Shown piece after piece: positions 3,098 to 38,439 of a stretch of DNA of 38,439 nucleotides. The stretch is from Macrostomum lignano (lineage: Eukaryota). Each line of letters begins with the position of its first letter. Positions within the stretch are counted from its first letter, which is position 1. The notes under the pieces were generated by a model, which did not search any database, had not been told where the DNA came from, and was given only the letters and a program-made list of their open reading frames with translations. The translations under genes were made by a program, and so were the position numbers. The stretch covers positions 1 through 38,439 of the forward strand of contig NIVC01002994.1 of NCBI GenBank assembly GCA_002269645.1, given 5' to 3'.

Positions 3098-3119
3098 GCC
3101 TGCCTGCCTGCCTGCCTGT

Positions 3120-3156
<37 letters not shown>

Positions 3157-4249: not shown

Positions 4250-4502
4250 CCGTGAGCTATGAGCATCAACTGAAAGTTCTGTGTGCTATGATCAGCAACT
4301 GAAAGTTCTGTGTGCTATGATCAGCAACTGAAAGTTCTGTGTGCTATGATCAGCAACTGAAAGTTCTGTGTGCTATGATCAGCAACTGAAAGTTCTGTGT
4401 GCTATGATCAGCAACTGAAAGTTCTGTGTGCTATGATCAGCAACTGAAAGTTCTGTGTGCTATGATCAGCAACTGAAAGTTCTGTGTGCTATGATCAGCA
4501 AC
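4250..4502. repeat. 29-bp tandem repeat (TGTGCTATGATCAGCAACTGAAAGTTCTG)
   Basis: Period 29 (TGAAAGTTCT at 4271 and 4300); about 8-9 copies. Confidence 0.95.
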
Positions 4503-4518
4503 TAATCATTAAATCAGG

Positions 4519-9640: not shown

Positions 9641-9710
9641 CTCCCTGTGTGCGATCCCAACCCCGACCTTCACGTCGGGAGTCCGGCGCTCTAATAACTA
9701 GGCTAATAAC
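9641..9710 (-). mobile_element. tRNA-derived (SINE-head-like) fragment
   Basis: The minus strand reads TAGCCTAGTTATTAGAGCGCCGGACTCCCGACGTGAAGGTCGGGGTTGGGATCGC: an A-box/D-arm-like start and a degenerate B-box-like segment. It is not a foldable tRNA. Confidence 0.4.
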
Positions 9711-10204
9711 TAACCCCCTATGCTATGGAATCTGCAGCACTGACAAGTCATAAGAAGCATCTGCAATCAGACAGTCTGTCAGAGTCAGAAACTCAATAAC
9801 TGCTATGCTCAATCACTAATGCATTCTTTCAAGCTGCATCGATACTAATGCCTGGGATTATTAATTATAAAAAAATGTCTTGACAACATTTTGGAATCTC
9901 AATTTTAATTCTTAATCAGCAGATGAGATCCCTATCCTTGATTTTTGACACTATAGCTCAATCTCAATCTAGACAGAATTATCATTCATCCCAAGATCTT
10001 TATCTTCCATTCCAACCCTAATCTCAATCACGAGATGATTTCCTCTTCCGTCTTACTCTTATCTATTATCTTTGATTGAATATCCTTAAATCCTTAATCC
10101 TGATCCCAACTCTGTTAAATAGATATAACCCTTCCCTCTAGGCTATTGTATTAATAATCCCGGTCCCAGCCAATATTAATATCGATGAATTTTCATTTCT
10201 TAAT

Positions 10205-10895
10205 TTCTATCCCAACCCAAACCCCGACACTCCCTATCCTGTAGTCCCGATCCCAACCCAAATCTCGATACTCCCTATCCTGTAGTCCCCGATCCCAACC
10301 CAAACCCGATACTCCCTATCCTTTAGTCCCGATCCCAACCCAAATCCCGATCCTCCCTATCCTGTAGTCCCGATCCCAACCCAAATCCCGATCCTCCCTA
10401 TCCTGTAGTCCCGATCCCAACCCAAATCCCGATCCTCCCTATCCTGTAGTCCCCGATCCCAACCCAAATCCCGATCCTCCCTATCCTGTAGTCCCGATCC
10501 CAACCCAAATCCCGATCCTCCCTATCCTGTAGTCCCGATCCCAACCCAAATCCCGATCCTCCCTATCCTGTAGTCCCGATCCCAACCCAAACCCCGATAC
10601 TCCCTATTCTATAGTCCCAATCCCAACCCAAACCCCGATACTCCCTATTCTATAGTCCCAATCCCAACCCAAATCCCGATCCTCCCTATCCTGTAGTCCC
10701 CGATCCCAACCCAAATCTCGATACTCCCTAGATCCTGTAGTCCCGATCCCAACCCAAACCCCGATCCTCCCTATCCTGTAGTCCCCGATCCCAACCCAAA
10801 TCCCGATACTCCCTATTCTATAGTCCCAATCCCAACACAAACCCCGATACTCCCTATTCTATAGTCCCAATCCCAACACAAACCCCGATACCCCT
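10205..10895. repeat. 41-42-bp minisatellite (CCCGATCCCAACCCAAATCCCGATCCTCCCTATCCTGTAGT)
   Basis: About 16 tandem units. Confidence 0.93.
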
Positions 10896-11852
10896 AATGG
10901 AATCCTACTAGATGAATAGACATATTGCGTCACTCACCGACAGCAGGAGACTCAACGCCAGCACTGAACAAGCAGTATGCGTAACGGAGCGCAATTGTCT
11001 AAGCCTTGTGGATTTCATTATTCCAATTAATTATAATAATAACCTATCCTGGATCTATTGGGTTGAGATTCTTTGTTTATTGGATTCTAAGTTAATAATA
11101 AACTGCTTTGAAAAAGAAACAGTAAGGTGCAGTCAGCTTAGGATGCTCCAAGAAGAACAAGAAGGGGAGGATTTGAACTTGCGTTTGGGGAGGCGGGAAG
11201 AAGGGCAACACAAAAACCTGTACAGTCTGAATCTGGAAGTCCTGTGTTTGGCTGGGGGGCCTGGCCTAGTAAAGACGGGCTTGGATTTTATTAACCCTCC
11301 CAACAAATACAATGAGGAGTAGTGGGGTAGTGGTCGCCCTGAATGTACATTTAAAGATCAGACCTGGAGGAGGAATGGGAGGGCCCAGTCGGGATAGGGG
11401 GGGGGAGGGGCGTCTTTACCCGCAAATGTACATTCAGCCCTGAAGGCTAAGTAAACTGGGGGCGGGGGCTTGCCCCCCCCCCGACTCCGGGAGTTGTACC
11501 CCAACTCCTTCCTAGCTCTCAAGCCGCACGCAAACCGGGAATGGCAGAAATGGCTTCCTCTCCCCCGTCCCCCCGACCCCTCCGGTGTCCTTGCCTATGA
11601 ACTTATGATGATAGATTTTTCAAAGCTTACTGAGACCTGGGCTGAGGCCTGACCCTGAGCTCGTGTGCGCGACGCGGACGGACGTGGAGTTAATGAAAAA
11701 CCCGCGGCTTTGGCCTTAATAAATACGCAAGAGGGTGGCTTGGTCAGGGTGAGGTGTGAGAGAGTGACAGACTGAATTTGAGTGTCTCGATTTGAACTTG
11801 AAGCGACCCAGTTCATTCCCAAAAATCCCAACCCAAATGATTTTGATTAATA

Positions 11853-13095: not shown

Positions 13096-13801
13096 GTAAC
13101 CAACTCTGCTTAACTTGCAGGATCTGACGGTAGAAGCCCTGATCAATTGTGGTATCTACTTTCTCGTGTCTAGCACAAAGCCTTGCAATTCACTTGTTTA
13201 CTAAAATATTGAATTAAGAACAATTTCTCATGCCAGAGCAGTTTCTGTTTGGTTCAACAGTAGAAACCACAAGATCGAGTATAAACTGTTTGTGGGGTTG
13301 ACTACTCTTCTATCGCTACTAACAGTAGGCCAGTAGTGATTGAGGAACTCGTAAGGAAATTCATTGAAAAAATGATTTCATTTATACTTAGGCATGCCTT
13401 CTTTGGCTTGCATTTAGGGGACGCTGGCAAAGAATAAGTCAAACATTTGGGTTTTTGTGCACCTGATTCCGTCTGCCAGTATCAATACTGCTTTCATTGT
13501 CTTGGCTGATGCGAGGCTTGCATGTTAATTAAAAAGAGTTACAGGTATTCAGTTTCGCAACTTTCGCAATACTAATGATCGACTAGGCATAATGGCAGTC
13601 AAACATAAATCATTTACTATCTTGGACTCGCTAACCGAATCGAAATTTTCTTGGCACGCGCCTGAACGCTGCGTTTCCGGTTTTCAGGCAACTTTGAGGT
13701 GATGTCTCTGATGCGATCACCATCATGGTATATATTGGAGCAACGCGTGTCCAAATTTACAATTATTCTTTACACTGACTGTGGCGAGTCCCTTACAAGC
13801 A

Positions 13802-14524
13802 ATGGACTTAGGCGCTTCTATCCTTCTGTTTCTGCTTCTGTGCTCCGCGCATGCTCAGTCGCTGTGTCCGAGTCCATTTGCCAACTCGTCCGGTCCATGT
13901 CTGCTTGAGAACACCGAACAAAGCTACTCCTGGTGCGAGGCCAACTCAGAGTGCGCAGCGCTCGGAGGCGAGCTGGCGAATGCTTACAACACCATTAGGA
14001 ATCGAAGTTCCCACCACGACTTGTGGATCGGCGTCTCTGACCATGCCGAGGAGCGCGGCACCAACCGATCGGGCTGGGGGCTTATTAATGATAATGGCAT
14101 TCTTATAACAAGTGATTCACTTTGGGACTATTCAGAGCCAGACAGACCTGTGGATGACTGCTTGAGGATAAAACCGAACACTTACAACGGAACTTTGGCT
14201 AATAGGCGATGCTCAAAAATTTATGGCTACCTGTGCGAGTTCCGGCCGGCGACTCGACCTGCCGCAAAGCTGCAGCCGGCCGCCTGGAGGCGAGTGGAGT
14301 TCAAGCGGACCAGCTACAACCCGAGCACCGAGTACTGCTACAAAGATCTGACTGGGATGCCGAGCTCTGTGAGCTGCGTAGCGGCGGCTGGCCGAGACAA
14401 AAACTGCAGACGCGCGCTGTACAACAGGAGGTCGAAGCTGTGCCGCCTGCTGCTGTTCACCGACGCTCAGGTCGAGTCGGAGATCGAGAACGGCGAGGAC
14501 TGGGCGAAGTACAGCGTGACGTGA
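13802..14524 (+). CDS. Secreted C-type lectin-domain protein with C-terminal PAN/apple-like module (240 aa, intronless)
   Basis: Signal-peptide-like MDLGASILLFLLLCSAHA. CTLD hallmarks: C...SWCEANSECAALGGELA, LWIG, W..SEPD, C...RCS..YGYLCEF. A second Cys cluster (CYKD...SC....C..ALYN...KLCRL) resembles PAN. The ATG at 13802 is preferred over the GTG at 13781. Confidence 0.85.
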   Translation: MDLGASILLFLLLCSAHAQSLCPSPFANSSGPCLLENTEQSYSWCEANSECAALGGELANAYNTIRNRSSHHDLWIGVSDHAEERGTNRSGWGLINDNGILITSDSLWDYSEPDRPVDDCLRIKPNTYNGTLANRRCSKIYGYLCEFRPATRPAAKLQPAAWRRVEFKRTSYNPSTEYCYKDLTGMPSSVSCVAAAGRDKNCRRALYNRRSKLCRLLLFTDAQVESEIENGEDWAKYSVT

Positions 14525-15608: not shown

Positions 15609-18600
15609 TCAGGCTGTTTTGGTCCTCGAACGCTTCGTCCGCCTTTTTCCCGTTGATCTTCTCGACCGGCCACCCGCACCGGCCGACTTCGCGGTGGCCG
15701 GTTTGGCCGACTTAGCCGTCCGTCCTGACGGCACCGGGGCCGTCTCCGGCCGGGTGGCAACGCCGGCTCGTGTCGAAGTGGATGCCTCCGGAGCAGCAAC
15801 TGGCGACGGAAAGAACTCGACCCGGCGGCCCTGGCAGTAGCGCTGGTTGCAAACCCGGCAGATGTTCGGCTCCAACATTTTGCCCACAAAGTCGCCCAGC
15901 AAGCATTCGCGGCAGTAGCGCGTGCCGCACCATTTGCACATGTACGTCTGCGAGAGAGGAGGCGGGGAGACACTGCGACCCCGAATTTCTCATTGACAGG
16001 CACAATTTGTGCTTCTGGGTTTGGCCTCTGAATCTAACCCAGGGACTTAAAAGATTTCCTGCTTTATATTGTTGCTTATTTTATGTCTTAAAAGAGTTAT
16101 TGACTGAATATGCAGTTCAGATTAACAAAGTATGTGTTGAGCATCACGTTTGATTACTTGATGGCACATCTATTAAGACTATATAGGAAACAACAATAGA
16201 ATTGCCCCTTGGCAACCTCAGAATCGCCCTTGGCAACCTCAGAATCGCCCCTTTTAGCAACCTCAGAATCGCCCCTTGGCAACCTCAGAATCGCCCCTTT
16301 TAGCAACCTCAGAATCGCCCCTTGGCTACCTCAGAATCGCCCCTTTTAGCAACCTCAGAATCGCCCCTTGGCAACCTCAGAAACGCCCCTTTTAGCAACC
16401 TCAGAATCGCTCCTTTTAGCAACCTCAGAATCGCCCCTTGGCAACCTCAGAATCGCCCCTTTTAGCAACCTCAGAATCGCCCCTTTTAGCAACCTCAGAA
16501 TCGCCCCTTGGCAACCTCAGAATCGCCCCTTTTAGCAACCTCAGAATCGCCCCATGGCAACCTCAGAATCGCCCCTTTTAGCAACCTCAGAATCGCCCCT
16601 TGGCTACCTCAGAATCGCCCCTTGGCTACCTCAGAATCGCCCCTTTTAGCAACCTCAGAATCGCCCCTTGGCAACCTCAGAATCGCCCCTTTTAGCAACC
16701 TCAGAATCGCCCCTTGGCAACCTCAGAAACGCCCCTTTTAGCAACCTCAGAATCGCTCCTTTTAGCAACCTCAGAATCGCCCCTTGGCAACTTCAGAATC
16801 GCCCCTTTTAGCAACCTCAGAATCGCCCCTTGGCAACCTCAGAATTGCCCTTAGCAACCTCAGAATCGCCCCTTGGCTACCTCAGAATCGCCCCTTTTAG
16901 CAACCTCAGAATCGCCCCTTTTTAGCAACCTTAGAATCACTCCTTAGCAACCTCAGAATCGCCCCTTAGCAACCTCAGAATCGCCTCTTATCAACCTTAG
17001 AATCACTCCTTAGCAACCTCAGAATCGCCCCTTGGCTACCTCAGAATCGCCCCCGAGCGTCCCCAATTATCTGCAATTAAAATTGCATTTTGGAATCCAG
17101 CCTTAAAAATTTCAAGATATAGGACAATCTTTTAAAAATTAGGCTTCTCTAATTTGGTAATTATCGAGTACAATATAGTTACTTTATTCAAATCTTATCT
17201 AGTTGCAGCATATAACTATCAAGCAGGAATTTAGAAAAACTTCTATTGCTGTAAAAAGATTCAATCATCAGACGAACGTCTGCCCCACCGGCTCCCAATT
17301 TTTTTCCAAACGGGATTCTGTGAAGGCTTAAAAATATTTCCATTGCTATAAAAAAGGCTCATGAATAATTAATGAGCTCTCAAGCGCAGCTGCATCTGCG
17401 AAGCGGTCTCTGGTTTGGGGTACCCGGCCCCAGGCAGTGTTTTGTCAGCTGGCTGACAGATTGGGCCCGCAGCTTCACATAGTTGATGAAGCAAAGAAAC
17501 GCTTTCATTTTCATAGCCAAAACCTCAGATGGGTTTTTTTAAATTGCGTTATTTCACTGTTTGCGTGGCAAATCCAACATTTTGTATGATTTCATTGCAT
17601 TTGCTGTGCCAATTGGTTGTATGCTTACCATGCAGTCCAACAGCTTTGCTATACTAAAACAAAGTCCATTGTATCATTTGTTTCGCGAGATTACACAGGA
17701 CTTTGGTAAGGTGTTACCTGTACATGTACATACACTGGATCATGATAAGATGTGGCCAGTACATACATTGAATCATGGTAAAGGTGTATCTGTACATACG
17801 TACGTGGAAGCATGGTAAAGTTGTACCTGTACATACATGGAATCATGGTAAATGTGTACCTGTACATACATGGAATCATGGTAAATGTGTACCTGTACAT
17901 ACATGGAATCATGGTAAATGTGTACCTGTACATACATGGAATCATGGTAATGTGTACCTGTACATACATGGAATCATGGTAATGTGTACCTGTACATACA
18001 TGGAATCATGGTAAGTTGTACCTGTACATATCTGAGATACATGGGATCATGGTAAGGTATCTGTGCATACAACTGACTGTCTGGGTGTGAGGCACACGAA
18101 TCCCAGGTTCAGGGCGCAATTATCGGTCGGATTGCAATGCCATGCAGTTTGTCATTGTCCCCGACTTTTAATATGAGAACTTGATCATTTTAGCCCCCGC
18201 TAAGTTTCTCTCTCTGCATCCGTATTCCTGCTAACTAGGACTCGCCTATGCGTTCAGGCTTAATTCACCTGTTGACTAGAGGCAAACACGAGATTAAGTG
18301 AGGAACTGTGTACATGCGCGCACCTATATTGTAGGCACATGTAATGCTGCACTAGCTATGCAAGCAATTTCCCTTGGCACACAAAAGCACAATCAAGCGG
18401 ATATACTGCTGTACTTGCTGACTTGCTTGTCACTGAGGGAAGTTACGGGCAAGCGAGTGAGTAAAACAGCACAACTTTTCCGATTTCACTGGTCTCAGTG
18501 TCTATATATTTCTGTTTTCGATGTATAGCTTCGTACTAAAGGCAGAAATTAGCAATTAAAGCCAACAGAAACTGCAACAGAATTATTCTCACCGAATCAA

Positions 18601-21525: not shown

Positions 21526-24500
21526 ATGGCTACTGCACACATGCAATCAAGTGCTGTTAGAGCACTGCAGCAAGAACTTAAGAGTTTAAATGAGGAGCCA
21601 GTCGAAGGATTCAAGGTTAAATTAAAAAATGATGAAAATATTTTTGAGTGGAATGTTGTAATCTTTGGTCCTCCTGGAACACTATACCAAGGTGGATATT
21701 TCAAGGTATGTTATGTTGGCAGCTGGCTATAAAACTTAAAAACTATTTAGAAAATCATGTCAATACTCTTTTCTGCTCACATTAGTTATGTTTCATATTT
21801 TGTAATACCTGTTTCTTTCCTGTCTTAGTATCATAAATGTGTTATGTTTTATTTATTATTTAGTTAGCTTATTTAATTTAATGCTTTTTACTTTATAATA
21901 ACTTAATTAATAAGTGGCATTGTTGTATGTAGAATAAAAAGTTATACAATAATATTATAAAAATTATATAATATATACTTTGTAACGTTGTTTTATTTAT
22001 TATTAGGCCCTAGAGGCTTATATCTAGTGGATTTTAGGTTAAGTTTCAAATTTGATTCTATTATAAAGGTTACTACTAAGTATGGAATCTTTGCATGGCA
22101 ATTTTGTGGAATTTTTGGAACAAAAAGTTGTATGCAAAATTTTTATCCAATTTTTTACTCTAAGCCATGCCATAGTCTAGATCATGCTAAATGCATGCCC
22201 AAACAAAATTAAAAATTAAATTATTACAAATGCACTCTAACAAAATTGAAAGCATGCTTATTCTCCAAACTATGCTAGTATTATTAGAAATTATCTTTTT
22301 TATAATGTGACAATAAAAGACTTTTTAAATTGCATAGTAAGCATTTTTTGGCAAATAATTTGGGTAATTTGTTGCTTTTTTGGGTGATACTATTTATAGC
22401 AGAAAATTGATATATGCAAAGATTTGTTTAATTGCTTTATTACATACTAAAAAAACTGGAAAGCTTGAAATTAAAGCTTAAAATAAACTTTTTTCATCTT
22501 TTTTCTATTCTATAATAACTTTTCTATGATTCTATAAAGTGCATACCAGGTGTGCATGAACGATTTTCTTAGGAGTGATGTACACCAACTGTATATGCCT
22601 ACTTTTGGCATGCAAGGCCAATGCATATCTAAATTTTTGGGTATATAGTACATGATCCAAAATGTAGAAACCATGTAAGATTTTTGGCATTTGAATTTTA
22701 TAAGCAACTTTTTTACTTAGGATATTTTATACAAAGTTTAAATAAATACCTAAAAAGTAATTTTATAATTCTCTTTTAATGTTATTATAATTCTTAGTGG
22801 CTTTTCTTTTAAATGCAATAACTTTGTTTTATTGTAACAGATAAAATATTCAACATTATCAAATGAAATCCCAAGTTTTTTGAACAAATCAAAGCTGCGC
22901 ATGTAGACCTTTTAGAGTTGTGCAAGTTGGGATTACAAGTATGTGTAAGATGGTTTGCTTGGTTGATTGCATGTGCGCACATTTACTAGCTCTTATGTAC
23001 ATTTGCTTGCTATACAATGATAATATATAAGTGAATGCCTTGGCGCCCTGGGCAGCCAAGAGTTGGTCTACGCCTTAAGCCAATTTCTCGTTTTCGCTTG
23101 TTCTTACATATGCATAAGTGTGAGAGTTTTTGTTAGTGTGCATAGAATATGTATAGGATTTTGTACAAAAATTTTATCCTAAGAGGCTATTATCTTAAGT
23201 GTGGCCAATTATTATATTAGAGCTAATTTCAAAATTGCAAATACCATTTTGTCAACACTAATATGCAAAGTTTCAGTGAGAAAATTTATTAGTATACCAA
23301 GTTATTAGAGTATATATACATGGTATACATGTATATATGCATTTTGTCTGTTACCTTCAAAGTATTTTTAATAGGCCTATATATTTAGAGAGAGCTATGT
23401 CTGCATCAGCTTTGACTTTGTTGGTCATTGGCCTTCACCCAGATGGAGCTTCTGTACCTTCAATAGGTTGCACCAGGTGCAACTATGGCAAATAGAATAT
23501 TTTTTGCTAATGACACCTTTATATTTAAACAGGCTCTGATGGTGTTTCCGCAAGACTATCCTTACTCGCCACCATCCATATCGTTTGTCTCCAAAATGTT
23601 TCACCCGAACATTTACGATGTAAGTTGCCTGACTGGTCTGTTCCCTTCAATTCATATTGTTAGAATGTTGGAACAATACCAGACAGTAAGGATTGAATGT
23701 GGAATTTCAGGATGGCAAAGTGTGCATCTCCATCCTGCACCCACCTGGTGAGGACCCTGTGAGCGGCGAGCTGCCCTCAGAACGCTGGAATCCCACTCAG
23801 AATGTGCGCACCATTCTGCTCAGCGTCATCTCGCTGCTCAACGAGCCGAACACTTCTTCGCCAGCCAATGTGGACGCGTCAGTCATGTTCCGCAAGTGGA
23901 AGGAGAACAAGGGCGATGACTATGTCAAAATTGTCCTGTGAGACGCCCCTGCTTCACTTCTTTGGGTGGGCCTTTCAATCCGCCCACCCCCAGACTTCAG
24001 TCCGCCCACCCCCAGACTTCAGTCCGCCCACCCCCCCCCCAGTTTGGAGGACTTCAATCCGCCCTCCCACACTTCAATCCGCCCTCCCACACTTCAATCC
24101 GCCCTCCCCCAGTCTTCAATCCGCCCTCCCACACTTCAATCCGCCCTCCCCCAGACTTCAATCCGCCCTCCCCAGTCTTCAATCCGCCCTCCCACACTTC
24201 AATCCGCCCTCCCCCAGACTTCAATCCGCCCTCCCCCAGTCTTCAATCCGCCCTCCCACACTTCAATCCGCCCTCCCCCAGACTTCAATCCGCCCTCCCC
24301 AGTCTTCAATCCGCCCTCCCACACTTCAATCCGCCCTCCCCCAGACTTCAATCCGCCCTCCCCAGTCTTCAATCCGCCCCCAGTCTTCAATCCGCCCTCC
24401 TCAGTCTTCAATCCGCCCTCCCCAGTCTTCAATCCGCCCCCAGTCTTCAATCCGCCCTCCCCCAGTCTTCAATCCGCCCTCCCCAGTCTTCAATCCGCCC

Positions 24501-25121
24501 CCAGTCTTCAATCCGCCCTCCCCCAGTCTTCAATCCGCCCTCCCCAGTCTTCAATCCGCCCCCAGTCTTCAATCCGCCCTCTCCCAGTCTTCAATCCGCC
24601 CTCCCCCAGTCTTCAATCCGCCCTCTCCCAGTCTTCAATCCGCCCTCCCCCAGTCTTCAATCCGCCCTCTCCCAGTCTTCAATCCGCCCTCCCCCAGTCT
24701 TCAATCCGCCCTACCGCACGTTCAGTCCGCCCTCGGCTTCCACTTCAATCCGCCGCCAATCCGCCCCTCTGCCCCAACCAGGAAGCAGGTGGAGCTGACC
24801 CGCAAGGACGCGGACGCGGACGGCATAGTTGTGCCTGTACGAGTCGAAGATTACGTTGTGAAATCTCGGACAACTTCGACTTCCGTTGGCGGCGGCAGCG
24901 GCGGCTTCGGCGGCGGCAGCCACGCAGATCAGGACAACAACGACTCAGACGTGCCATTCGAAGTCTACGACGATCAGATCGACTACGACGATGACGACGA
25001 CGAAGATGATGAAGAAGAGGAAGACGATGAGGAGGACGGCGGTCGGGCTGACGGCCGGGCCAACGCCAGACACGCCAAGTTCGAGGACGACGAGGACAGC
25101 GGCTCCTTTCATCACGTCTGA
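21526..25121 (+). CDS. CDC34: Ubiquitin-conjugating enzyme E2 R (CDC34/UBE2R), 277 aa; exons 21526-21705, 23533-23619, 23711-23937, 24782-25121
   Basis: All introns are GT-AG with matching phases (0, 0, 2). The protein has FHPNIY, the active-site GKVCISILH, the CDC34-type acidic loop [30 protein letters not shown] and an acidic C-terminal tail. Confidence 0.95.
23975..24765. repeat. ~21-23-bp minisatellite (CTTCAATCCGCCCTCCCCAGT) filling CDC34 intron 3
   Basis: Direct reading; source of the P/S-rich ORFs 23802, 23938 and 23966. Confidence 0.95.
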
Positions 25122-25742: not shown

Positions 25743-26446
25743 CTCTTTAAATCTTGCATCGCCAATCATGCCTACAAGGTACAGTCCAGTTAGAAATGCT
25801 CTGCTTGGCTACACTGGGGTGCATATTGAATAATTTGATTTGGGTTGGCAGTGACTGCACCCAAGGTCGCGAGTCTGTTGGTATTTATTTGGCTATTTGT
25901 TTTTACCCAGTTTTAACCCGCGCCTGTACTGTTTTATGCGCTCTGTCTTTTATCCTACTCTTAATGCGAAATTATTTAAGCTACTTTACGTTTCTCAAAT
26001 TATAACAATAGAACTGCGACTTGTAACGTTTTGAATTCTCTTGATCTTTTAAGCCTAATGCAACCTCGATAGCTTAGAGATTTATCCTTGTGTTCCTTGC
26101 TTGTTATAATTAAACACCAAATTTTCAAAGGATGTGGAAAATCGCTCAGATATGTTGGCCTATGGTACGATTGTGTATAGAAATACGAGTATTACACAAT
26201 ATTGCTGACACGTGTCATTAGCCAGTATGCATTGTTTTTCCTGGTTTTAAATATACGCAACTCAGTTGTATAATTATATGTATAACTTGATTGGTTCTAT
26301 TGCCAACTGCATGGCTTAACAGTAGATGACCTTAACTGTACCGTTTGACCTTCTGCCGTTCATTCTTTATCATTGATGCCCTAACACTGGGCATGGGTTA
26401 ATGAGTGCTGTATCTATCTTAATTTCACTGATTTAGGTCCGTTCTA

Positions 26447-28024
26447 CTGACGCCAATGATTCAGGTCACTGACACCAATGATTCAGGTTACTGACATCAA
26501 TGATTCAGGTCACTGACACCAATGATTCAGGTCACTGACATCAATGATTCAGGTTACTGACATCACTGATTCAGGTTACTGACACCAATGATTCAGGTTA
26601 CTGACATCACTGATTCAGGTTACTGACACCAATGATTCAGGTTACTGACATCAATGATTCAGGTTACTGACATCAATGATTCAGGTTACTGACATCACTG
26701 ATTCAGGTTACTGACACCAATGATTCAGGTTACTGACATCACTGATTCAGGTTACTGACACCAATGATTCAGGTTACTGACATCAATGATTCAGGTTACT
26801 GACATCAATGATTCAGGTTACTGACACCAATGATTCAGGTTACTGACGCCAATGATTCAGGTCACTGACATCAATGATTCAGGTTACTGACACCAATGAT
26901 TCAGGTTACTGACACCAATGATTCAGGTCACTGACACCAATTATTCAGGTTACTGACACCAATGATTCAGGTCACTGACACCAATGATTCAGGTTACTGA
27001 CACCAATGATTCAGGTTACTGACATCACTGATTCAGGTCACTGACATCAATGATTCAGGTTACTGACACCAATGATTCAGGTTACTGACACCAATGATTC
27101 AGATTACTGACGCCAATGATTCAGGTCACTGACACCAATGATTCAGGTTACTGACGCCAATGATTCAGGTTACTGACATCAATGATACAGGTTACTGACA
27201 CCAATGATTCAGGTTACTGACACCAATGATTCAGGTCACTGACGCCAATGATACAGGTTACTGACACCAATGATACAGGTTACTGACACCAATGATTCAG
27301 ATTACTAACACCAATGATTCAGATTACTAACACCAATGATTCAGGTTACTGACACCAATGATTCAGGTTACTGACGCCAATGATTCAGGTTACTGACATC
27401 AATGATACAGGTTACTGACACCAATGATTCAGGTTACTGACACCAATGATTCAGGTCACTGACGCCAATGATACAGGTTACTGACACCAATGATACAGGT
27501 TACTGACACCAATGATTCAGATTACTAACACCAATGATTCAGATTACTAACACCAATGATTCAGGTTACTGACACCAATGATTCAGGTTACTGACACCAA
27601 TGATTCAGGTTACTGACACCAATGATTCAGGTTACTGACACCAATGATTCAGGTTACTGACACCAATGATTCAGGTTACTGCCATCAATGATTCAGGTTA
27701 CTGACACCAATGATTCAGGTTACTGACACCAATGATTCAGGTTACTGACATCAATGATTCAGGTTACTGACACCAATGATTCAGGTTACTGACATCAATG
27801 ATTCAGATTACTGACATCAATGATTCAGGTTACTGACACCAATGATTCAGGTTACTGACACCAATGATTCAGGTTACTGACACCAATGATTCAGGTTACT
27901 GACACCAATGATTCAGGTTACTGACACCAATGATTCAGGTTACTGACACCAATGATTCAGGTTACTGACACCAATGATTCAGGTTACTAAACACCAATGA
28001 TTCAGGTTACTAACACCAATGATT
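26447..28024. repeat. 22-bp minisatellite (ACTGACACCAATGATTCAGGTT), ~72 copies
   Basis: Period 22; a second block of the same repeat lies at 28359-28575. Confidence 0.96.
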
Positions 28025-28128
28025 CATCGATTAACAAATCGACTATCTGAATCTGGCCAGAAAATGGAACCCGCTGCTCCAACCGAACCGCTATTCAAAT
28101 GAATCAGTTTTGGCCATAGACATAATCG

Positions 28129-30780: not shown

Positions 30781-31189
30781 CATTCATGCAAAGCAGCAAA
30801 AACCAAAAATAAGCAAGAAGTCTAAATTTTATTTAAAATGTGAAGGGGCCAGTGTGACAGTGTGATTCGTAGAAGCGCGTGTATCGTATTTCTTTATTTT
30901 CATATGCATACCGTGCTACTACTGTATTCTTCCATTTATTTTAACAATATTCGTACGTATTATTATCGCGCTATTTTTACTGTTAATTGCTTTGTTTTTG
31001 TAGCCTCGTATGTATTTATTCTGTTATTTGTATTTCATTCATATCGTTATTATTTCTCGTAAAGTAGTTCTACTTATGTACATGTACTGACGTATGTTAT
31101 TCTTGCATGATCTATTTATCGATTAATTTGTACATGTACATTGCGCGCCGCGTGGGGGGTTGTTTGTCTGGGTTTTGGATTAAGGGTGT

Positions 31190-31290
31190 TAGTAGTAGTA
31201 TGTTATAAGGGGCTGCGCCACACTTATTGCTCGGGCGCATTGCGCGCCAGCTCGCTGGATGACTCAACCCCTTATAACATACTACTACTA
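31190..31290. repeat. Perfect 23-bp inverted repeat with Polinton-like AGTAGT/ACTACT ends
   Basis: TAGTAGTAGTATGTTATAAGGGG (31190-31212) and CCCCTTATAACATACTACTACTA (31268-31290), with a 55-nt GC-rich spacer. Confidence 0.9.
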
Positions 31291-31713
31291 CCAGGAGGTC
31301 ATGGGTTCAAGTGGGGTGTGATAAATATAAAAATATATAAATATACATATATCTGTGACTGAGGGTGTTGAGGGTGAGGGCATGTGGGGGGCATTGGCCT
31401 GTGGTATATTTCTCAGAAGACAGAATTTCCGGATTTTTTATACTTTTAAAAAGGGGGGTGCCCTCGCCCTCATGCCCTCACTCATTTTGAAAATCACTAA
31501 AAATAAGTGAAAAATGACTAAAAACAGGCGAAAATGGTCTGAAAACAGCGATTTTTTGTGATTTTCAAAAATTTTGAAAAAGTGCAATTTTCACGATTCC
31601 AGCTCTAAAACCATGAGAAAAGTTGGATTCACGGGTCAATTTAATGCAATTTCAGGTATATACAATATGAAAGTGTCATCCAATTCAACGATAGTAAATT
31701 ATATATATATAAA

Positions 31714-31845
31714 ATGGCCTTCAGTAAACCATTATTTCTAGGAAATGCTTTAGATATTCAGTCAGCTATAACAAAACTACCACCCATCTTCGCCACTGGA
31801 AAATACCCAGGAGAACTTCATATTCCAGGGTATTCTTTTGCAGGT
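31714..31845 (+). CDS. PLA2-integrase fusion, exon 1 (44 codons; below the ORF-track cut-off)
   Basis: MAFSKPLFLGNALDIQSAITKLPPIFATGKYPGELHIPGYSFAG is the N-terminal half of a parvovirus-VP1u-type PLA2 Ca2+ loop. It ends in U, as group I 5' exons do. Confidence 0.88.
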
Positions 31846-32725
31846 TACGTAGTGGCCTGAGTGAGGAAGTCAATGTCCTTGCTAGTCATCAAATAAGCAC
31901 TTGTTAAAGTTTCTATAGTAAAAATGGAGCAAACAATTCGAGAAATTCTTCTGAAACCAATTGATGATAAGGTTGGGCATGATCAAATTCTTCATGATCT
32001 TTTCCAAGAAGAGTTAATAATTTCACACAAGATTAAAGTTATTCAAATGAGACTAGGCAGACTATATGAAATATTAGCAGAAAATTATTTTGGATTCGAG
32101 AAGGTAAAAAAGATAGACCTGGTTCACGTTGAGCGAAAGATTGCATTAGAGCTTAAATCTTCTGATAACACGGACAATTCATCAAGTCGTGAAAGGAATT
32201 ATCAGAAACTATTAGACTATAAAAATTCTTATCCCACCTATCAGTTGTATTATGTATGCATCAATAAAACTACAAAGGAACCTAAGAATATTTTACTAGA
32301 CAATGGAATCACCCTTATAACAGGAGAATTTGCATTGAAATTTCTTTATGGTGATCAATACAAAAACATTATAACCAACATTAAACAAGTGCTTAGTGAT
32401 TGGCGACACCTTCAAATTGCGGGAACTCCGTCCGATTCTAGTACGTCAATAACAGCCTCAAGTACCACTTCAGTTGAGAAATCTTCTGAAGGAACACAGG
32501 TAATTCCTGTTCCCAATCGGACTTCGTCCGCGAACCTATGGTTCGATGGTAACAAGCTTGAGGACATGGTGGAAATCCGCAGCCAAGCTCCTAAGTCCGA
32601 ACGAAGTTGACAAGGATATGGAGAAGGTTCAGAGACTTAATGGGGGTGGGGCTGAAGGATCTGGTCAATCCTGATGAAGCCTTAAGATAAAGTCCAGCCT
32701 CTTTCGAAAGATTGAGGAACAACTG
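31846..32725 (+). ncRNA. Group I self-splicing intron (880 nt; IC1-like architecture with P2.1 and extended P5)
   Basis: Conserved motifs: P AAATTGCGGGAA (32414), Q AATCCGCAGC (32574), R GTTCAGAGACTTAA (32627), S AAGATAAAGTCC (32684). Pairable helices: P1 with U31845.G31855, P3 (32407-14/32641-48), P4, P6, P7, P8, P9 with a GAAA loop, and P9.0. Terminal G at 32725. Removal restores an in-frame GYSFAG|PGT. Confidence 0.93.
31924..32610 (+). CDS. Intron-encoded PD-(D/E)XK nuclease, restriction-endonuclease-like (resembles the Eco47II family); putative homing endonuclease
   Basis: Motifs QMRLGRLYE, IDL, ELK and NTDNSSS in the first ~160 aa. The ORF starts inside the P2.1 loop with the element's TAAAAATG start motif. 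The last ~68 codons are read-through across the ribozyme core. Confidence 0.75.
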   Translation: MEQTIREILLKPIDDKVGHDQILHDLFQEELIISHKIKVIQMRLGRLYEILAENYFGFEKVKKIDLVHVERKIALELKSSDNTDNSSSRERNYQKLLDYKNSYPTYQLYYVCINKTTKEPKNILLDNGITLITGEFALKFLYGDQYKNIITNIKQVLSDWRHLQIAGTPSDSSTSITASSTTSVEKSSEGTQVIPVPNRTSSANLWFDGNKLEDMVEIRSQAPKSERS

Positions 32726-33952
32726 CCGGGTACAAATTTAGACAAGAGACTCAATCCAATTACAGACCGGCCTCGGTATGACAGTCTACCAATTAACCCA
32801 ATCGATTGGACTGCTTACTATCATGACAAAAACTATAGAGATGCTGAAAACACTTCTTCAAATCCAGAGGAAGCTCTAGCAAAGAAGCATATAGCTGATG
32901 AAAAAATGATAGCTGATTTAGATGCTATTCCAACCAGTGACTTGTCTGTGAAAGAGAGACTCATTCGAAATCTAGTAAATCGTATTATCAAGGCTAAAGT
33001 TCGGTTTGGATTAGGCATTCATACTCACAACCCCAACAATTGTATAGACTGTCTAACAATTTATGGTAAGGGTCTTAGCTATGAAGATGCAGTAAAATTG
33101 CATAAAGAATATCGAAAGCCAAGAGTATTTAGAAAAATGATTCACTATGCAAAAGACACAATTTGGCATGCAGATATCATTATCCTTCCTCCTGAAAGAG
33201 GTTACAAATATGCTCTCACTATCATAGATGGTTTTACACGTTACGCCTGGGCAGTTCCTTTGAAAACAAAGACGGGAGCGGAAGTTGCAGAAGCTTTCCA
33301 AAAAGTATTTAAGGAATCAGGAAGACGACCAGAGAGACTTTGTGTAGATGAAGGCAAGGAGTTTTATAATCAGCATATGTACAAGCTATATTCGTTTTCA
33401 AAAGACAACATTAGAAAGAAGGATGAAAAGGGTGAATATATAAACAAGATGTTTTCAATTTATGGCGAGTCCAAGAATGCAATGATTGAGAGGTTCAATC
33501 GTACTCTCACAAATAAACTCTGGTTTGAATTTGATCTACAGGGTAATCAGAAGTGGCTCCACACATTGCCAGCTATTGTTGAAAAATACAACAACACAAT
33601 CCATTCTGAGATTCTGATAACTCCTTCAGAAGCATCTAAACATCCTGAGCGAGTACCAAAGCCAACTTTCGAGTATTCAAATGAGAAACCAAACTTCAAA
33701 GTAGGTGACAAAGTTCATATCTATAGATATAAGGAGCACTTTGAAAAGGGTCGAAGAGGATATTGGAAAATTTCAGAAGTGTTTAGGATAAAGAAAATAG
33801 TTTACTCAAATCCCATAACTTACATAATTGAGGATGAGAATGGAGAAGAAATCATTGGATCATTTTACAAATCCCAGCTTCTACCAGCAAATTTTTCAAC
33901 TAAAAATGAGCGCCTATCGAACAAACTGCAAACGGGCGAAAGGTCAGATTGA
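32726..33952 (+). CDS. PLA2-integrase fusion, exon 2 (spliced product 452 aa)
   Basis: In frame with track ORF 32906: PGTNLDKRL...PINPIDWTAYYHDKNY...HIADEKM (PLA2 His-Asp dyad and second Asp), then HTH...CIDC, then an rve core WHADII / CVDEGKEF / MIERFNRTL and the Polinton-type C-terminus FKVGDKV...PITYII.D..GEEIIGSFY. Confidence 0.93.
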   Translation, partial: PGTNLDKRLNPITDRPRYDSLPINPIDWTAYYHDKNYRDAENTSSNPEEALAKKHIADEKMIADLDAIPTSDLSVKERLIRNLVNRIIKAKVRFGLGIHTHNPNNCIDCLTIYGKGLSYEDAVKLHKEYRKPRVFRKMIHYAKDTIWHADIIILPPERGYKYALTIIDGFTRYAWAVPLKTKTGAEVAEAFQKVFKESGRRPERLCVDEGKEFYNQHMYKLYSFSKDNIRKKDEKGEYINKMFSIYGESKNAMIERFNRTLTNKLWFEFDLQGNQKWLHTLPAIVEKYNNTIHSEILITPSEASKHPERVPKPTFEYSNEKPNFKVGDKVHIYRYKEHFEKGRRGYWKISEVFRIKKIVYSNPITYIIEDENGEEIIGSFYKSQLLPANFSTKNERLSNKLQTGERSD

Positions 33953-34328
33953 AACGTCTGATTCACAACTACTAGCTGATAAAGAGGGTGAAGGAATTGG
34001 TGATATGATCAGTGGTGTCACAAACTTTTTATCAAATCATGGAAGTAAAATTGTGAGTGGAGCTGATGCAATAGGTAAAACAGCTACCACAGCGAAGAAC
34101 ATATTCGATGCGAAGAAATCATACAGTGACATGTCTAAAGCAGGTGAGGAACTGGAATATATTAAAAAGAAACGTAGAGATAAAGAAGCAAAGAAAATAA
34201 TGGAAGAAGAGCAACAGATAGCTTCTCAATCAAATAAGGCTATTCAAGATATTGTTAAAAAGGCTCTAGGAACAGCAGAACAGTCTCAAGTGTCTTTGAG
34301 ACAAGGCAATGGTTTGAAGAAATTCTGA
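33906..34328 (+). CDS. Small Polinton virion/core-like protein (140 aa), function unknown
   Basis: Start reassigned to TAAAAATG at 33906. Amphipathic segment after EGEG (IGDMISGVTNFLS), K/E-rich helix and a terminal QGNG motif. Confidence 0.75.
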   Translation: MSAYRTNCKRAKGQIETSDSQLLADKEGEGIGDMISGVTNFLSNHGSKIVSGADAIGKTATTAKNIFDAKKSYSDMSKAGEELEYIKKKRRDKEAKKIMEEEQQIASQSNKAIQDIVKKALGTAEQSQVSLRQGNGLKKF

Positions 34329-34336
34329 CCTTAAAA

Positions 34337-34789
34337 ATGAGCGAGAAAAACACTGAAGCAAGACTCAATCGATATGTTCGAGAGGGAAAACCAAGATATG
34401 TTACTGTAAATAAGCAAAAGCAATATCTTTCTAAAGAGAAGATTCGAGAATTGCAAGAGAAACAGAAAGAACATGAAGGTGGAATAATTCCTCTATTAGG
34501 CTTGCTACCAGCAATTTTGGGTGGTATTGGAGCAGCCTCCGGAGTTGGTACAATGATTGCAAAAAGTGTTAATACAGCCAACAATGCTAAGCATAATAAG
34601 ACAATAGAAAGCATTGAACGGCAAAAACTAGAAGAGTTGAAAAAGGCTCAAGGGAGTGGAGTATTAGTTGATGCGGCTAAAATAGTCGAACAAGTACCCA
34701 GCGAAGCAGTCAAGTGGCTGCTAAAGACGTTTAAAGTTGAAAAGGAGAAACAGGGTAATGGGATAATTCTTAGACCTCATGAAGCTTAG
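34337..34789 (+). CDS. Polinton core-like protein with an adenovirus pX-like hydrophobic segment (150 aa)
   Basis: Basic N-terminus, then EGGIIPLLGLLPAILGGIGAASGV, which recalls the GG(F/I)LP-hydrophobic tract of adenovirus pX. QGSG and QGNG motifs follow. Confidence 0.75.
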   Translation: MSEKNTEARLNRYVREGKPRYVTVNKQKQYLSKEKIRELQEKQKEHEGGIIPLLGLLPAILGGIGAASGVGTMIAKSVNTANNAKHNKTIESIERQKLEELKKAQGSGVLVDAAKIVEQVPSEAVKWLLKTFKVEKEKQGNGIILRPHEA

Positions 34790-34809
34790 TTGAAATTTCT
34801 CTTATAAAA

Positions 34810-36174
34810 ATGGAGAACAAAAAGGATATACTGAGCATATATGAGGACAAAACTTTTAGCTTTTTCAAAAAGAAAGAAGACTATATTAAGATTTCTCCAA
34901 CTCCAGGTAGCACTAATAATCTCAATGTTGCAGGAGGTCAAATAGTTCATGAAGTCAATTCAACAGAGTCATACATTCTCATGTCAGAGGCATTCGGTTG
35001 TATAAAATACTCAATAACACAACGAGATAACACCGACTTGAATACGAACATTACTCTAGAACATAATTGGCCTATGAGACTTTTCTCTCAACTCATAGTT
35101 GACATTGGAGGAACAAAGAAAGTCTATAATGATCCTGGAGAGTATGACACAATCTTAAAGTCCGTAATGTACTCAAAATTAATGAATGAAGTTGGAGAAG
35201 CATACGGATGGATTCCAGACACTGGAGATGCTGGGACTGTTTCTGATATACCTCTAGCAAACAACGCAGATGCTGAAGCTGTGAGAACTGCAGCAATCGC
35301 TATGAAAAATAGACTCAATAAGAAGGATTCGAATACTGGATACATTAGGAGGCTTGAAAATTATAACAATGTCACTAATGCTCCAAACAGAGGTGGAACA
35401 ATCAAACTATCATTAACACCTCTCATTGGGTTCCTTGATTGGCAGAAGATTAGCAAAGGAATTAAATATAAATTCACATGGACAAGAAAGACTAACGATG
35501 CTGAAATTTTCTTTGGAGCTGCCGGGACGGAAGCTAAGTTAACTATTAATAGCTTTGAGATTTGGATCCCTGCTATTACTTTGTCACCCAGTGCTGAAGC
35601 AGCTTTTCTAAAATCACTCAACAAGGACATTACAGTATCATTTCCAGAGAGGGTAACGGTTCCACCACAACTCATTCAAGGAAGTCCATATACATGGAAC
35701 ATAGCCAACATCTCCAATATGCCACTTGCAATCTTTGTAGCTTTCAAATATGACGTAAACAACCCATCATATATAGTTAATGATCACAAGTATGTGTCTT
35801 ACAAAACTGGAGCAAATTCAGTGAAAATAACCCAGCTTCAAGTCAGATTAAATCAGGTGATGTATCCGAATGATTATGTTGAAATTGATCCAGTAGCTCA
35901 AGACATTCACAGAGCGTATGAAATGTACGAAGACATCTGCAGCCGTTTCGGTGTAACTCCTCCATTCAATAAACAAGACTTTCTAACCATCTATCCAATC
36001 TTTTGCTTTGATCTAACAGCTCAAGATGAGTTTCTGGTCAAGAGTGGAGTGAATATTCAATTATTTATCAAGAAGTCAACAAATGTTGAGCTGACTGCTT
36101 TTGCACTAATTCTTGAACAAACAAAGAATGTAATAAAAGTTACCAGTGAATATCAAATGACCCGCGTCGAATAA
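34810..36174 (+). CDS. Major capsid protein (double jelly-roll, hexon-like; 454 aa)
   Basis: Size, beta-strand-rich composition, Polinton MCP-like C-terminal motifs (QLQVRLNQVMYP...AYEMY...YPIFCFDLT) and position between the core proteins and the ATPase. The ORF is intact. Confidence 0.85.
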   Translation: MENKKDILSIYEDKTFSFFKKKEDYIKISPTPGSTNNLNVAGGQIVHEVNSTESYILMSEAFGCIKYSITQRDNTDLNTNITLEHNWPMRLFSQLIVDIGGTKKVYNDPGEYDTILKSVMYSKLMNEVGEAYGWIPDTGDAGTVSDIPLANNADAEAVRTAAIAMKNRLNKKDSNTGYIRRLENYNNVTNAPNRGGTIKLSLTPLIGFLDWQKISKGIKYKFTWTRKTNDAEIFFGAAGTEAKLTINSFEIWIPAITLSPSAEAAFLKSLNKDITVSFPERVTVPPQLIQGSPYTWNIANISNMPLAIFVAFKYDVNNPSYIVNDHKYVSYKTGANSVKITQLQVRLNQVMYPNDYVEIDPVAQDIHRAYEMYEDICSRFGVTPPFNKQDFLTIYPIFCFDLTAQDEFLVKSGVNIQLFIKKSTNVELTAFALILEQTKNVIKVTSEYQMTRVE

Positions 36175-36195
36175 GGTCATTTTTTCTTTTTTTAA

Positions 36196-36965
36196 ATGCC
36201 CAAAGTAAAATTTCGGCATGATCCTATTTTCCCTAATCCTCTTTTATGTTGTATTATCGGCGCTACAAATACGGGTAAAACATATTTACTATTCCATATT
36301 CTTACAAGTCCTGAAAAACTAGTTGACTTTAATGAGTTAGTTTTATATGTTCCCAGAGCATCTCAAATGGATCCAGAGTATCAGTTTCTAAAGCATGGCT
36401 TTGAAAATGGTCTCCCACCTTCTCTTATCAACTCACTCTATCATGTCTACCAGGTGAGTGAGGATGCATCTCCTGAAGATATTAAGCATATTTGTCGAGG
36501 CAGCCGACCTGGTGAGTGCAAAGCACATCAGAAAATTCAGAAGTAATAGAGAAAATTTCTGTCACTCTTTCCCATACTCCAAATGAAGAAATTTTTCATA
36601 ATGGACTAAAGACATGTGTGATATTGGACGATGTTTTGGGAGAGGCTAATCAAACATTTCAGGAAAGTCTGTTTCAGAGAGGCAGGCATGGAAACTGTTG
36701 TGGTTTTTATCTAGCTCAAAATTTTACCAAACTAGATCGCAATACTGTCAGGGAGAATACGACATGTTACATAATCTTTAAACAAAAAGATACAAACTTA
36801 AATCACATTGCTAGAAATATAGAAACGAATTATGAACCCGCTATATTCAAGGCTAAATGTAGAGAGGCTTGGAAAAAGAAGTATGGCTATATCTATATAA
36901 ATACAAGAGCTGATGAGGATGAGCAAGATTTGTATAAGGATGTTCTAACTAAAATCCCATTGTAA
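36196..36965 (+). CDS. DNA-packaging ATPase (A32/FtsK-HerA-like), split into two frames at ~36516-36543
   Basis: Walker A GATNTGKT in ORF 36196-36546. Walker B VILDD plus RGRHGN, AQN and RENT motifs in ORF 36516-36965. Confidence 0.88.
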
Positions 36966-36967
36966 AA

Positions 36968-37695
36968 ATGACTAATGAATATATAAGAGAACTCATTAAT
37001 TTAGCAAAGCAGCGAGAAATGTACAAATCCAGAAATGATGCTCAACGCTATTTGAAAATTGGAGAAGAGAGTTTATATGCAAGAGTGGCTCCATTAGCTC
37101 AAAAACCTGTCACAGAAAAGCTCGATGAATTTATTGATGTCAATGCCAACCTTGTTGATAAACTTCAGAATCAAAAAGTTCCAGTTCCGCAATCAAGTAC
37201 ACCAAAAGGCCGATTTGAACCCTAGAAGTATTTGACAAAATAATTGAAGAAATTGGAAAGATTCCAATAACTCAAAGACCAGCGCCTAGTATACGGATTC
37301 AAAAAACTGATGCTGGATATATATTTGGATCATCTGTAATAGATGTTGAATTCCATGAACAAGGTCGAGACATCATTGTCAACGAATTCGAATGCCATTT
37401 TCTGAAGATCTTGAAGAGTTGTTCAAAATGCCTAAAGTAACTGAAAATGGTGAAGAGCTGAAGCAATTCAAGATGCAAACATTGCAGGATTATGTTAACC
37501 TCATTGAACATTGTAAAAATCCAGCGGCCAAATCAAGTGGGAATTATAAGCAAGCAGTAAGGATATTGAAAGATAATCCACCAGGATATCGAGTAAAACC
37601 GGGATCTGGACTCAGTGAAAGAGTGTTGACATTACTAGCCGCAAAAGCAGGGACATAACAATGTTGATAAAGAGCTAGTAGAATTACTTGCTTAA
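36968..37695 (+). CDS. Polinton hypothetical protein, apparently one gene broken by three frameshifts (~37221, ~37390, ~37651)
   Basis: ORF 36968-37225 continues as LEVFDKIIEEIG..., then ORF 37392-37658, then AGHNNVDKELVELLA*. The final TAA (37693-95) overlaps the next TAAAAATG. Confidence 0.6.
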
Positions 37696-37697
37696 AA

Positions 37698-38439
37698 ATG
37701 GAAAAAGAAATAGAAAAAGTCAACATCCTCTTGAGTAAAAAGTTTCAACGCACATTTGACTTCTTTTCAATTAAAAACCCATTTCGACAAACTCTAGGCA
37801 CTCCTATAAATTTGTATGAAGATCGAGAATACGAAGCTGGTATAAAAAAGTTTGCAGTCTTTGATGCTATTAACAATATTGAAGGAGGCAATAATGAGTT
37901 GCGATACTCGAGGGATAGTGGTAGAACATGGAAAAAATAAAGATTCAAGCGGGATCTTGGGAAGTTAAAAGTCTGTCAAGCGAGATTCAAAGATTGCTAA
38001 CAGCTGCAAATGATTGGAAAGAGGGGGCTATTGTTTTCAGTGCAAGCCTAGACACGCGTAGAGTTGAGTTACGGTTAGCCACAGAGTATCAAGTTGATTT
38101 CAGGGATGCACATTCCAATAACTTTAGAAGACTGTTGGGATTCAATTCGGAAGTGTATTTGAAACCATTTGAGAGAGCTCCAAATCCAGCTCGGATAGAC
38201 GGAGCTAGAAGTGCGATCATGGTTCGTTGTCTCAATATCAAAGGGGTTTTATCACTGATCCAGCCAATGGAAATCATTTAATTGATAAGCAAATACTTTC
38301 TTTCATTCCATCGTTTCTCTGTCCAATGGGAAGTAAAATTATTCAGAGCCTGCAAATCCTGTGTACCTACCACTAACTACAAACATGTTGAGCCACATTC
38401 GACTTTGTCATCGAAGATGAGTCTGGTGTTCTATACGAC
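37698..38439 (+). CDS. Minor capsid protein (penton-like), frameshifted at ~37935, ~38245 and ~38346; runs off the window
   Basis: Joined frames give INNI...NNELRY...W..IKIQAGSWEV..L...LLGF...GSKII..PANPVYLPL, the pattern of Polinton minor capsid proteins. Confidence 0.75.

Follow-up and report, generated by a model that had tools for sequence, protein, structure and literature searches.

A group I intron carrying an Eco47II-type nuclease gene splits a Gly-Pro-encoded GGNCC site in a Polinton/Maverick-like element

The homing endonuclease I-Ssp6803I has the PD-(D/E)XK fold of restriction enzymes (PMC3424549), and with I-Bth0305I, which belongs to a Vsr-like branch, it exemplifies mobile group I introns that contain an endonuclease open reading frame (ORF) and are inserted inside the target of the encoded enzyme. 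Here we describe an arrangement of this kind in a 38,439-nt stretch of DNA (contig NIVC01002994.1, forward strand; hereafter the window), the last 7.3 kb of which (about 31100-38439) are one end of a Polinton/Maverick-like element whose right end lies beyond the window. The gene in question, the PLA2-integrase gene, encodes a parvovirus-type phospholipase A2 (PLA2) domain together with an rve integrase; PLA2 domains are known in adintoviruses and polintons (PMC8502044). It is interrupted by a group I intron with an ORF for a nuclease of the Eco47II family. As in the mobile introns, the endonuclease ORF is internal, the insertion lies inside the presumed target, the intron is present in some relatives and absent from others, and some nuclease copies are degenerating. 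Unlike enzymes of the I-Ssp6803I type, the window nuclease is of a Type II restriction family (PF09553), and its apparent target is 5 bp, with four bases specified, as against 14-40 bp; unlike the mobile-intron enzymes, its target appears to be unique through a genome-wide purge of the motif, and the carrier is a eukaryotic virus-like element.

Eco47II homologues and Sau96I have been linked to GGNCC (PMC10305163, PMC6346686), and the EcoO109I site, RGGNCCY, contains the same motif (PMC3089450). The window nuclease resembles these enzymes in its Pfam family and its D...ExK motif and has EcoO109I as its best structural match; avoidance of GGNCC points to the same target. It differs in that no methylase was seen to accompany it in the elements, where site loss and the intron would provide the protection, and in that the gene lies within an intron of a eukaryotic and viral, not a bacterial, carrier. 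Restriction-modification (R-M) pairs of giant viruses (Nucleocytoviricota) hold the closest homologues outside the clade and share the setting of a eukaryotic virus, but in those viruses it has a C5 methylase as its partner and GGNCC is left unavoided, whereas the elements described here have the nuclease alone and the site purged. A parallel is offered by the staphylococcal Rosenblumvirus phages, whose small genomes have wholly lost the very same short palindromic target, GGNCC (PMC6346686, PMC6286503). In those phages the enzyme is the host's, whereas in the window clade the elements carry the enzyme family themselves, and the one unavoidable site would now serve as the intron homing site.

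Free-standing homing endonucleases and "collaborative homing" have been described for cyanophage psbA and for the T4 seg and mob genes (Zeng et al. 2009 and Bonocora & Shub 2009, cited in PMC11296320). Two relatives of the window element similarly have a nuclease gene directly upstream of the target gene, and in the window the nuclease is in the intron at the target itself. The phage enzymes are long-site GIY-YIG or HNH endonucleases, and we know of no genome-wide site purge in their systems. Taken together, the upstream and intron-borne arrangements look like the proposed route by which a free-standing endonuclease gives rise to a mobile intron. Polinton-like viruses of protists contain group I introns of 309-376 bp, sited in a short gene that precedes the capsid gene and with no identified endonuclease (PMC12220804); the window intron is likewise in a gene of a Polinton-like element, and it carries a nuclease. 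The literature we searched yielded no earlier case of an intron encoding a nuclease of the Eco47II type or of Polinton-like elements that avoid GGNCC, nor any report of a Polinton/Maverick-like element in an apparent animal genome whose group I intron bears an active-looking nuclease. Mobile introns with homing endonucleases and homing enzymes of restriction fold are known; the window system differs from them in its nuclease family, in an apparently short site that would owe its uniqueness to avoidance throughout the clade, and in its eukaryotic virus-like carrier.

The intron and its nuclease

The intron occupies positions 31846-32725 of the forward strand (880 nt, last base G) and matches Rfam RF00028 with 88.9 bits, the intron of the related locus L005 scoring 65.3 bits (gathering score 50). 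Exon 1 (31714-31845, +) comprises 44 codons from the ATG at 31714, ends in GCA GGT and shares 84% identity with its L005 counterpart. Exon 2 (32726-33952, +) starts with CCG GGT in the integrase frame and encodes the remainder of the PLA2 domain and the rve integrase, so that the intron splits the Gly|Pro codons GGT|CCG in the calcium-binding loop. The frame is continuous once the intron is removed. The intron-less locus L117, whose protein is 74-77% identical, aligns to window positions 31692-31844 and then to 32725-33813; because the alignment stops at 31844 and resumes at 32725, the intron boundaries are exact. L117, L006 and L007 are all uninterrupted over the junction, and the equivalents of the two exons are contiguous in the intron-less proteins P0017 and P0023. 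An earlier reading of the window from its letters alone (the sequence-only reading) had placed the intron at 31841-32730, which recognized the intron correctly but added 5 nt of exon on each side. Its junction, GGT^CCG, with GGTCC spanning the insertion point of an intron-less allele, is borne out by the exon frame and by the L117 alignment.

Read from the sequence, the internal guide GCCUG (31855-31859, +) pairs with exon CAGGU (31841-31845) to form a P1 of 5 bp, with the 5' exon ending in U and a G.U wobble at the splice site. In L001-L004 the exon reads UUAGGU and the guide GCCUAA, a compensatory change. The core, P2-P9 (32333-32716, +), was located by the Rfam match, overlaps the 3' end of the ORF and is conserved in L002-L005. 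Among the five introns compared, 21 of 69 predicted core pairs are changed on both sides, and all five complete introns have a terminal G. The stretch 31846-32725 is a true group I intron, and it is predicted to be self-splicing. Rfam missed the introns of L002-L004, both at the gathering score and at E<=1; we considered decay of these introns and rejected it, since direct alignment recovered the same core with compensatory changes.

Five further elements, L001-L005, have this intron with its ORF at an identical junction, although the protein identity of their exons to those of the window is only 35-50%. The sequence-only reading had called for a survey of related elements for the same insertion point paired with the same nuclease family, and all five turned out to have the intron at Gly|Pro. 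The junction is GGT|CCN in 6 of 6 intron-bearing loci, the 5' half of the split GGNCC being GGT at 31843-31845 (+) in the window and the 3' half CC at 32726-32727.

The intron ORF (31924-32610, +) encodes 228 amino acids, of which residues 1-166 (31924-32421) form an RE_Eco47II domain and the remainder a tail that runs through the ribozyme core. It had been described as Eco47II-like, and it does pass the cut-off of the Pfam family RE_Eco47II (PF09553) with 30.1 bits against a gathering score of 25.9; the giant-virus family members and that of L007 score 37.7-47 bits. Residues D65 and E76-L-K78 and the motif TDNSSS are kept in sixteen relatives. AlphaFold (AF2) gave a predicted local distance difference test (pLDDT) score above 90 for residues 1-166 and below 50 for residues 167-228, a disordered tail, and the best solved match in Foldseek was EcoO109I (E 7e-5, probability 1.0), with BamHI and other such folds matching as well. 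An exact-sequence look-up returned no record, NCBIfam held no model matching the nuclease, PDB chains searched by sequence with the family profile yielded nothing meaningful, and the viral predicted-structure library gave just weak PD-(D/E)XK matches. With a dN/dS of 0.13-0.19 in the nuclease domain, the gene is, on codon comparison, under purifying selection with its catalytic residues kept. The protein is an Eco47II-family PD-(D/E)XK enzyme, for which recognition and cleavage of GGNCC are predicted. Cleavage of the Sau96I type is staggered, and the intron insertion point would lie within the staggered cut if the enzyme cuts like its namesakes.

Presence of the intron is polymorphic in both sub-clades. 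L003, with the intron, and L006, without it, have 94% DNA identity on both sides of the intron. P0022, a gene call that starts in the 3' end of an L003-type intron (cluster of 34), and the intron-less P0023 are identical at 386 of 386 positions past the junction. Such identical intron-bearing and intron-less alleles require recent gain or precise loss. The polymorphism fits homing, though it is not proof of it. Two of the intron-borne nucleases are broken, one by a single stop (L001) and one by a single frameshift (L002).

Avoidance of GGNCC and the residual Gly-Pro site

Not one GGNCC occurs from 30851 to 38439. For the 7.3 kb of the window element 8.8 sites would be expected, and 0 of 2000 dinucleotide shuffles reach zero; CCNGG occurs 13 times against 9.0 expected. 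The five intron-bearing elements together have a single GGNCC where 23.4 are expected, a stronger depletion than for any other of 272 patterns that specify four bases (the runner-up has an observed/expected ratio of 0.55). In eleven related elements totalling 88.6 kb, GGNCC was observed 4 times against 44.8 expected, with CCNGG at 73 against 45.2. Divided by the central base, the counts were 1 GGWCC against 29.3 expected and 3 GGSCC against 15.5. A compositional cause could be ruled out, since CCNGG shows no depletion and no other pattern of the 272 is as extreme as GGNCC. The narrower target GGWCC, considered because intron-less alleles often read GGGCC, was likewise ruled out, as GGSCC is purged too except at those very sites.

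The avoidance is confined in two directions. The host flanks of L001, L006 and L008 have GGNCC at expectation, and the flank in the window has 40 sites in 31 kb, including 675, 21667 and 30846; of the three host sites that the sequence-only reading had listed, 30846 was exact and the other two (674 and 21668) were off by one. Distant PLA2-integrase elements that have no nuclease are also at expectation (observed/expected 14/17 in L049, 19/21.5 in L084 and 29/31 in L107). As avoidance fades in distant elements, the purge is clade-specific and not compositional. Because Gly-Pro always encodes GGNCC, the proteomes of purged elements are also free of Gly-Pro: we collected 1002 homologues of the PLA2-integrase, many with both domains and among them the coral protein P0091 at 38% identity, and the dipeptide is nearly absent from the 80 closest but reappears farther out. 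Loss of the 5-bp motif from whole genomes argues for a recognition site that is short and would owe its uniqueness to avoidance.

What is left of the motif is concentrated at one place. Three of the four residual GGNCC sites in the eleven elements are the PLA2-loop Gly-Pro of the intron-less L006, L007 and L117, and in four short metagenome contigs (L047, L068, L085 and L093) the sole GGNCC is again the Gly-Pro site. With a single residual site, an intron-less element offers a GGNCC cutter exactly one target, and that target is the intron insertion point. The 1341-nt gene of an intron-less relative contains one GGNCC, inside which a random insertion would fall about 0.3% of the time. The only GGNCC in any element outside a Gly-Pro codon pair is in L003, a decayed copy; L003 also has a Ty3/gypsy-type retroelement (protease, reverse transcriptase, RNase H, integrase) at 6343-9975 (-) inside its capsid region.

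The sequence-only reading took the Gly-Pro site as one that synonymous mutation cannot remove. For synonymous change this is true, but non-synonymous loss has occurred: the loop reads G-A-Q (Pro-to-Ala) in L008, L119 and L019 and G-V-G (Pro-to-Val) in L118. L008 has no GGNCC and a free-standing Eco47II-type gene directly upstream of its PLA2-integrase gene. L118, also with no GGNCC, has a free-standing nuclease in the same position, 52-54% identical to the intron-borne ones, and L119 has no GGNCC in 13.6 kb. The nuclease, seen at first as intron-borne, is so in the window and in L001-L005, but free-standing copies of three lineages are present in the clade as well (L007, L008 and L118). That of L007 (8135-8722, -) is very divergent and is located after the ATPase gene.

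Outside the clade the nearest homologues of the nuclease, 30-39% identical, are in giant-virus metagenome bins beside C5 cytosine methylases, which is the classical layout of an R-M system. AT-rich giant-virus contigs with both nuclease and methylase show no avoidance of GGNCC. In one GC-rich giant-virus bin (L018, 1-20237), where a C5 methylase lies beside an Eco47II-type fragment, GGNCC is depleted five-fold (36 observed against 174 expected) and CCNGG occurs 164 times. Two contigs from IMG/VR departed from expectation. L099 (1-10671), a differently arranged PLA2-integrase element, has 0 GGNCC in 10.7 kb against 6.1 expected, a PLA2 N terminus with no GPG loop and a GIY-YIG-like ORF (2804-3145) just upstream; we tested it for a second intron type, and Rfam found no group I intron in L099. 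L113 (1-11730) is enriched in GGNCC, with 57 against 14 expected, repeats being the probable cause.

Explanations for the shared site

We favour an account, probably the right one, in which a family of GGNCC nucleases attacks the clade, its sites have been purged and the intron homes or interferes at the Gly-Pro pair that the codons force. A Polinton/Maverick-like clade would have come under attack by Eco47II-type nucleases with GGNCC, alone or within a larger site, as their target, and members of the clade themselves carry nucleases of this family. Every removable GGNCC would have been selected away, leaving the Gly-Pro pair of the PLA2 calcium-binding loop, which is immune to synonymous removal. 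A nuclease gene carried by a group I intron whose insertion point falls within that very site (GGT|CC) would leave its carrier with no target, while self-splicing would restore the protein. An intron-less relative would then present a single place to cut, where the intron is otherwise inserted. Were the break mended from an intron-bearing copy, the intron would be copied across (homing); left unrepaired, it would leave the rival element broken (interference). The anatomy, the purge throughout the clade, the one remaining site, the other ways of losing it, the intron polymorphism and the selection on the nuclease are seen in the sequences; we infer three parts of this scheme, namely the cleavage specificity, the cut-and-repair step, and the time and place of nuclease production.

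Several observations weigh against this account. At 30 bits the Pfam match is a modest one, and members of a restriction-enzyme family can diverge in specificity. The internal ORF sits behind an upstream frame of 48 codons, which raises the question of its route of translation in a eukaryote. The intron-bearing loci may share one insertion event, and in that case the agreement of junction with site counts only once; the eleven elements, too, are related, so that Poisson figures for their depletion overstate independence. L006 and L119, which have no nuclease in the part seen, are equally purged; as elements with no nuclease are purged, the pressure acts across the whole clade, and the selecting agent need not be this very enzyme. 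L007 retains its Gly-Pro GGNCC despite a free-standing family member (24% identical). The sequence-only reading had the intron immunize its carrier, and the intron does split the site, but the nuclease-bearing L007 keeps it and is unexplained by a logic in which the carrier must be immune. GGNCC is abundant in the host DNA around the element (40 in 31 kb), and no methylase was seen in the elements: Pfam found no methylase domain in the ORFs of the window, which holds a partial element, nor in the Pfam lists of L002-L008 and L119. Finally, the ATPase gene of the window copy has a frameshift, and this integrated copy is therefore partly decayed; its PLA2-integrase, nuclease and capsid ORFs are all open.

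The elements with no nuclease bear equally on an alternative in which the nuclease was a weapon first. A GGNCC nuclease would be mainly offensive and degrade host or rival DNA, a role proposed for the restriction enzymes of giant viruses, and the intron would merely patch a site that cannot be mutated, with little or no homing and with vertical spread. In its favour, the purge reaches elements with no nuclease, three unrelated-looking lineages of free-standing nucleases are present in the clade, and the Pro-to-Ala and Pro-to-Val changes reach the same end with no intron at all. Consistent with co-descent, divergence of the nuclease between clades (50-54%) is also like that seen in the host gene (46%). 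We nevertheless consider this explanation unlikely. Vertical spread sits poorly with intron-bearing and intron-less alleles whose downstream protein is 100% identical and with polymorphism in both sub-clades; the lone residual site, at the insertion point, is the exact substrate for homing; and the broken nucleases of L001 and L002 are typical of the life cycle of a homing endonuclease and would be odd in a weapon under constant selection.

The pressure might instead come from outside, from GGNCC R-M systems of co-infecting giant viruses or others, with the intron encoding an ordinary long-site homing endonuclease and the GGNCC at the junction an inherited core. A long-site PD-(D/E)XK homing endonuclease does exist in I-Ssp6803I (PMC3424549). 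Giant-virus contigs hold the same nuclease family beside C5 methylases, the intron-borne nucleases are nearer to the giant-virus ones (30-39%) than to the free-standing copies of the elements (24-29%), and here again the purging of elements with no nuclease is as expected. We regard this as distinctly improbable, because the host flank looks metazoan and the giant-virus contigs are AT-rich aquatic metagenome bins, because avoidance follows the nuclease-carrying clade and fades beyond it, and because the nuclease domain is small (about 166 amino acids), with no additional DNA-binding domain to lengthen the site. That the intron came to lie on a conserved GPG loop for other reasons, with the ORF a decaying passenger and the lack of GGNCC due to an unrelated process, is hardly credible: the broken ATPase of the window copy, the general use of conserved protein motifs as homing-endonuclease targets and a Pfam score barely over the cut-off are what it can draw on, but CCNGG, of the same composition, is not depleted while GGNCC is the strongest of 272 outliers, dN/dS is 0.13-0.19, the Pro-to-Ala and Pro-to-Val escapes adjoin free-standing nucleases and the host flanks are not depleted.

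The account of purging followed by homing or interference at the Gly-Pro site is in essence the interpretation first put forward from the window alone, which receives partial support; the predictions tested at the level of sequence all came out as predicted. A broader proposal, which in our judgment could fall either way, is that a Type II enzyme became a single-site homing and gene-drive nuclease through an arms race that stripped a clade of a 5-bp target, and not through longer recognition; the race would have spared just the Gly-Pro site of an essential loop, now occupied by the group I intron. An R-M system would thereby have turned step by step into a mobile intron, probably within the genome of an animal, and the intron, the Pro-to-Ala and Pro-to-Val changes, the free-standing copies beside the target gene and the giant-virus homologues with their methylases would each mark a stage. 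If so, the clade would be a natural worked example of the passage from restriction enzyme to homing endonuclease with the intermediates still present in relatives, and target uniqueness would be reachable by genome-wide avoidance of a site instead of by a long recognition sequence. A Gly-Pro motif would constitute an unavoidable DNA target, through which a constraint on protein shapes nuclease warfare among selfish elements. The total lack of both GGNCC and Gly-Pro would be a simple signature with which to find members of the clade and to date the conflict.

Other genes of the element and the host flank

In exon 2, the catalytic His-Asp of the PLA2 domain is at 32822-32827 and the rve core at about 33149-33379; Pfam scores were 42.7 bits for rve and 18 bits for Phospholip_A2_4, the latter under its cut-off. 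Besides the PLA2-integrase gene the element has two small ORFs. The double-jelly-roll major capsid protein (34810-36174, +) matches Pfam DJR-like_dom with 50.9 bits. It is followed by the broken A32-like packaging ATPase (36196-36965, +), in which Pfam detected Pox_A32 on the piece downstream of the single frameshift and which the L006 ATPase matches in two frames. The integrase, double-jelly-roll capsid protein and A32-type ATPase, all assigned by Pfam, form a Polinton/Maverick block that also occurs in L002, L004, L006 and L008. A DNA_pol_B_2 gene lies at the far end of L008, and the window covers just one end of its own element.

The left end of the element is not fixed, since DNA homology to relatives begins only at 31692-31711. 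Upstream of the first gene are an inverted repeat at 31187-31293 (53-nt arms, 75% complementary, 1 nt between them) and two shorter ones at 31374-31481 and 31485-31570; the repeats at 31187-31570 may be part of a terminal or promoter region. The left 31 kb of the window are rich in minisatellites, with arrays at 4281-6955, 8607-9635, 10209-10896, 16198-17053, 24052-24734 and 26445-28026 (units of 20-41 bp, at most 82 copies). Long "ORFs" on both strands at 4484-7000 were rejected as genes, being a product of these arrays. In the ORF at 13781-14524, which begins with a signal peptide, Pfam scored a C-type lectin domain at 29.1 bits, and a homologue search with this ORF gave one match only. This ORF is the sole clue to the host, which on its account looks like an animal.

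Gene order differs between the sub-clades, as seen when 33828-36174 of the window is compared with 11358-13720 of L006: a 162-amino acid gene of L006 follows the capsid gene there, and in the window its homologue precedes it.

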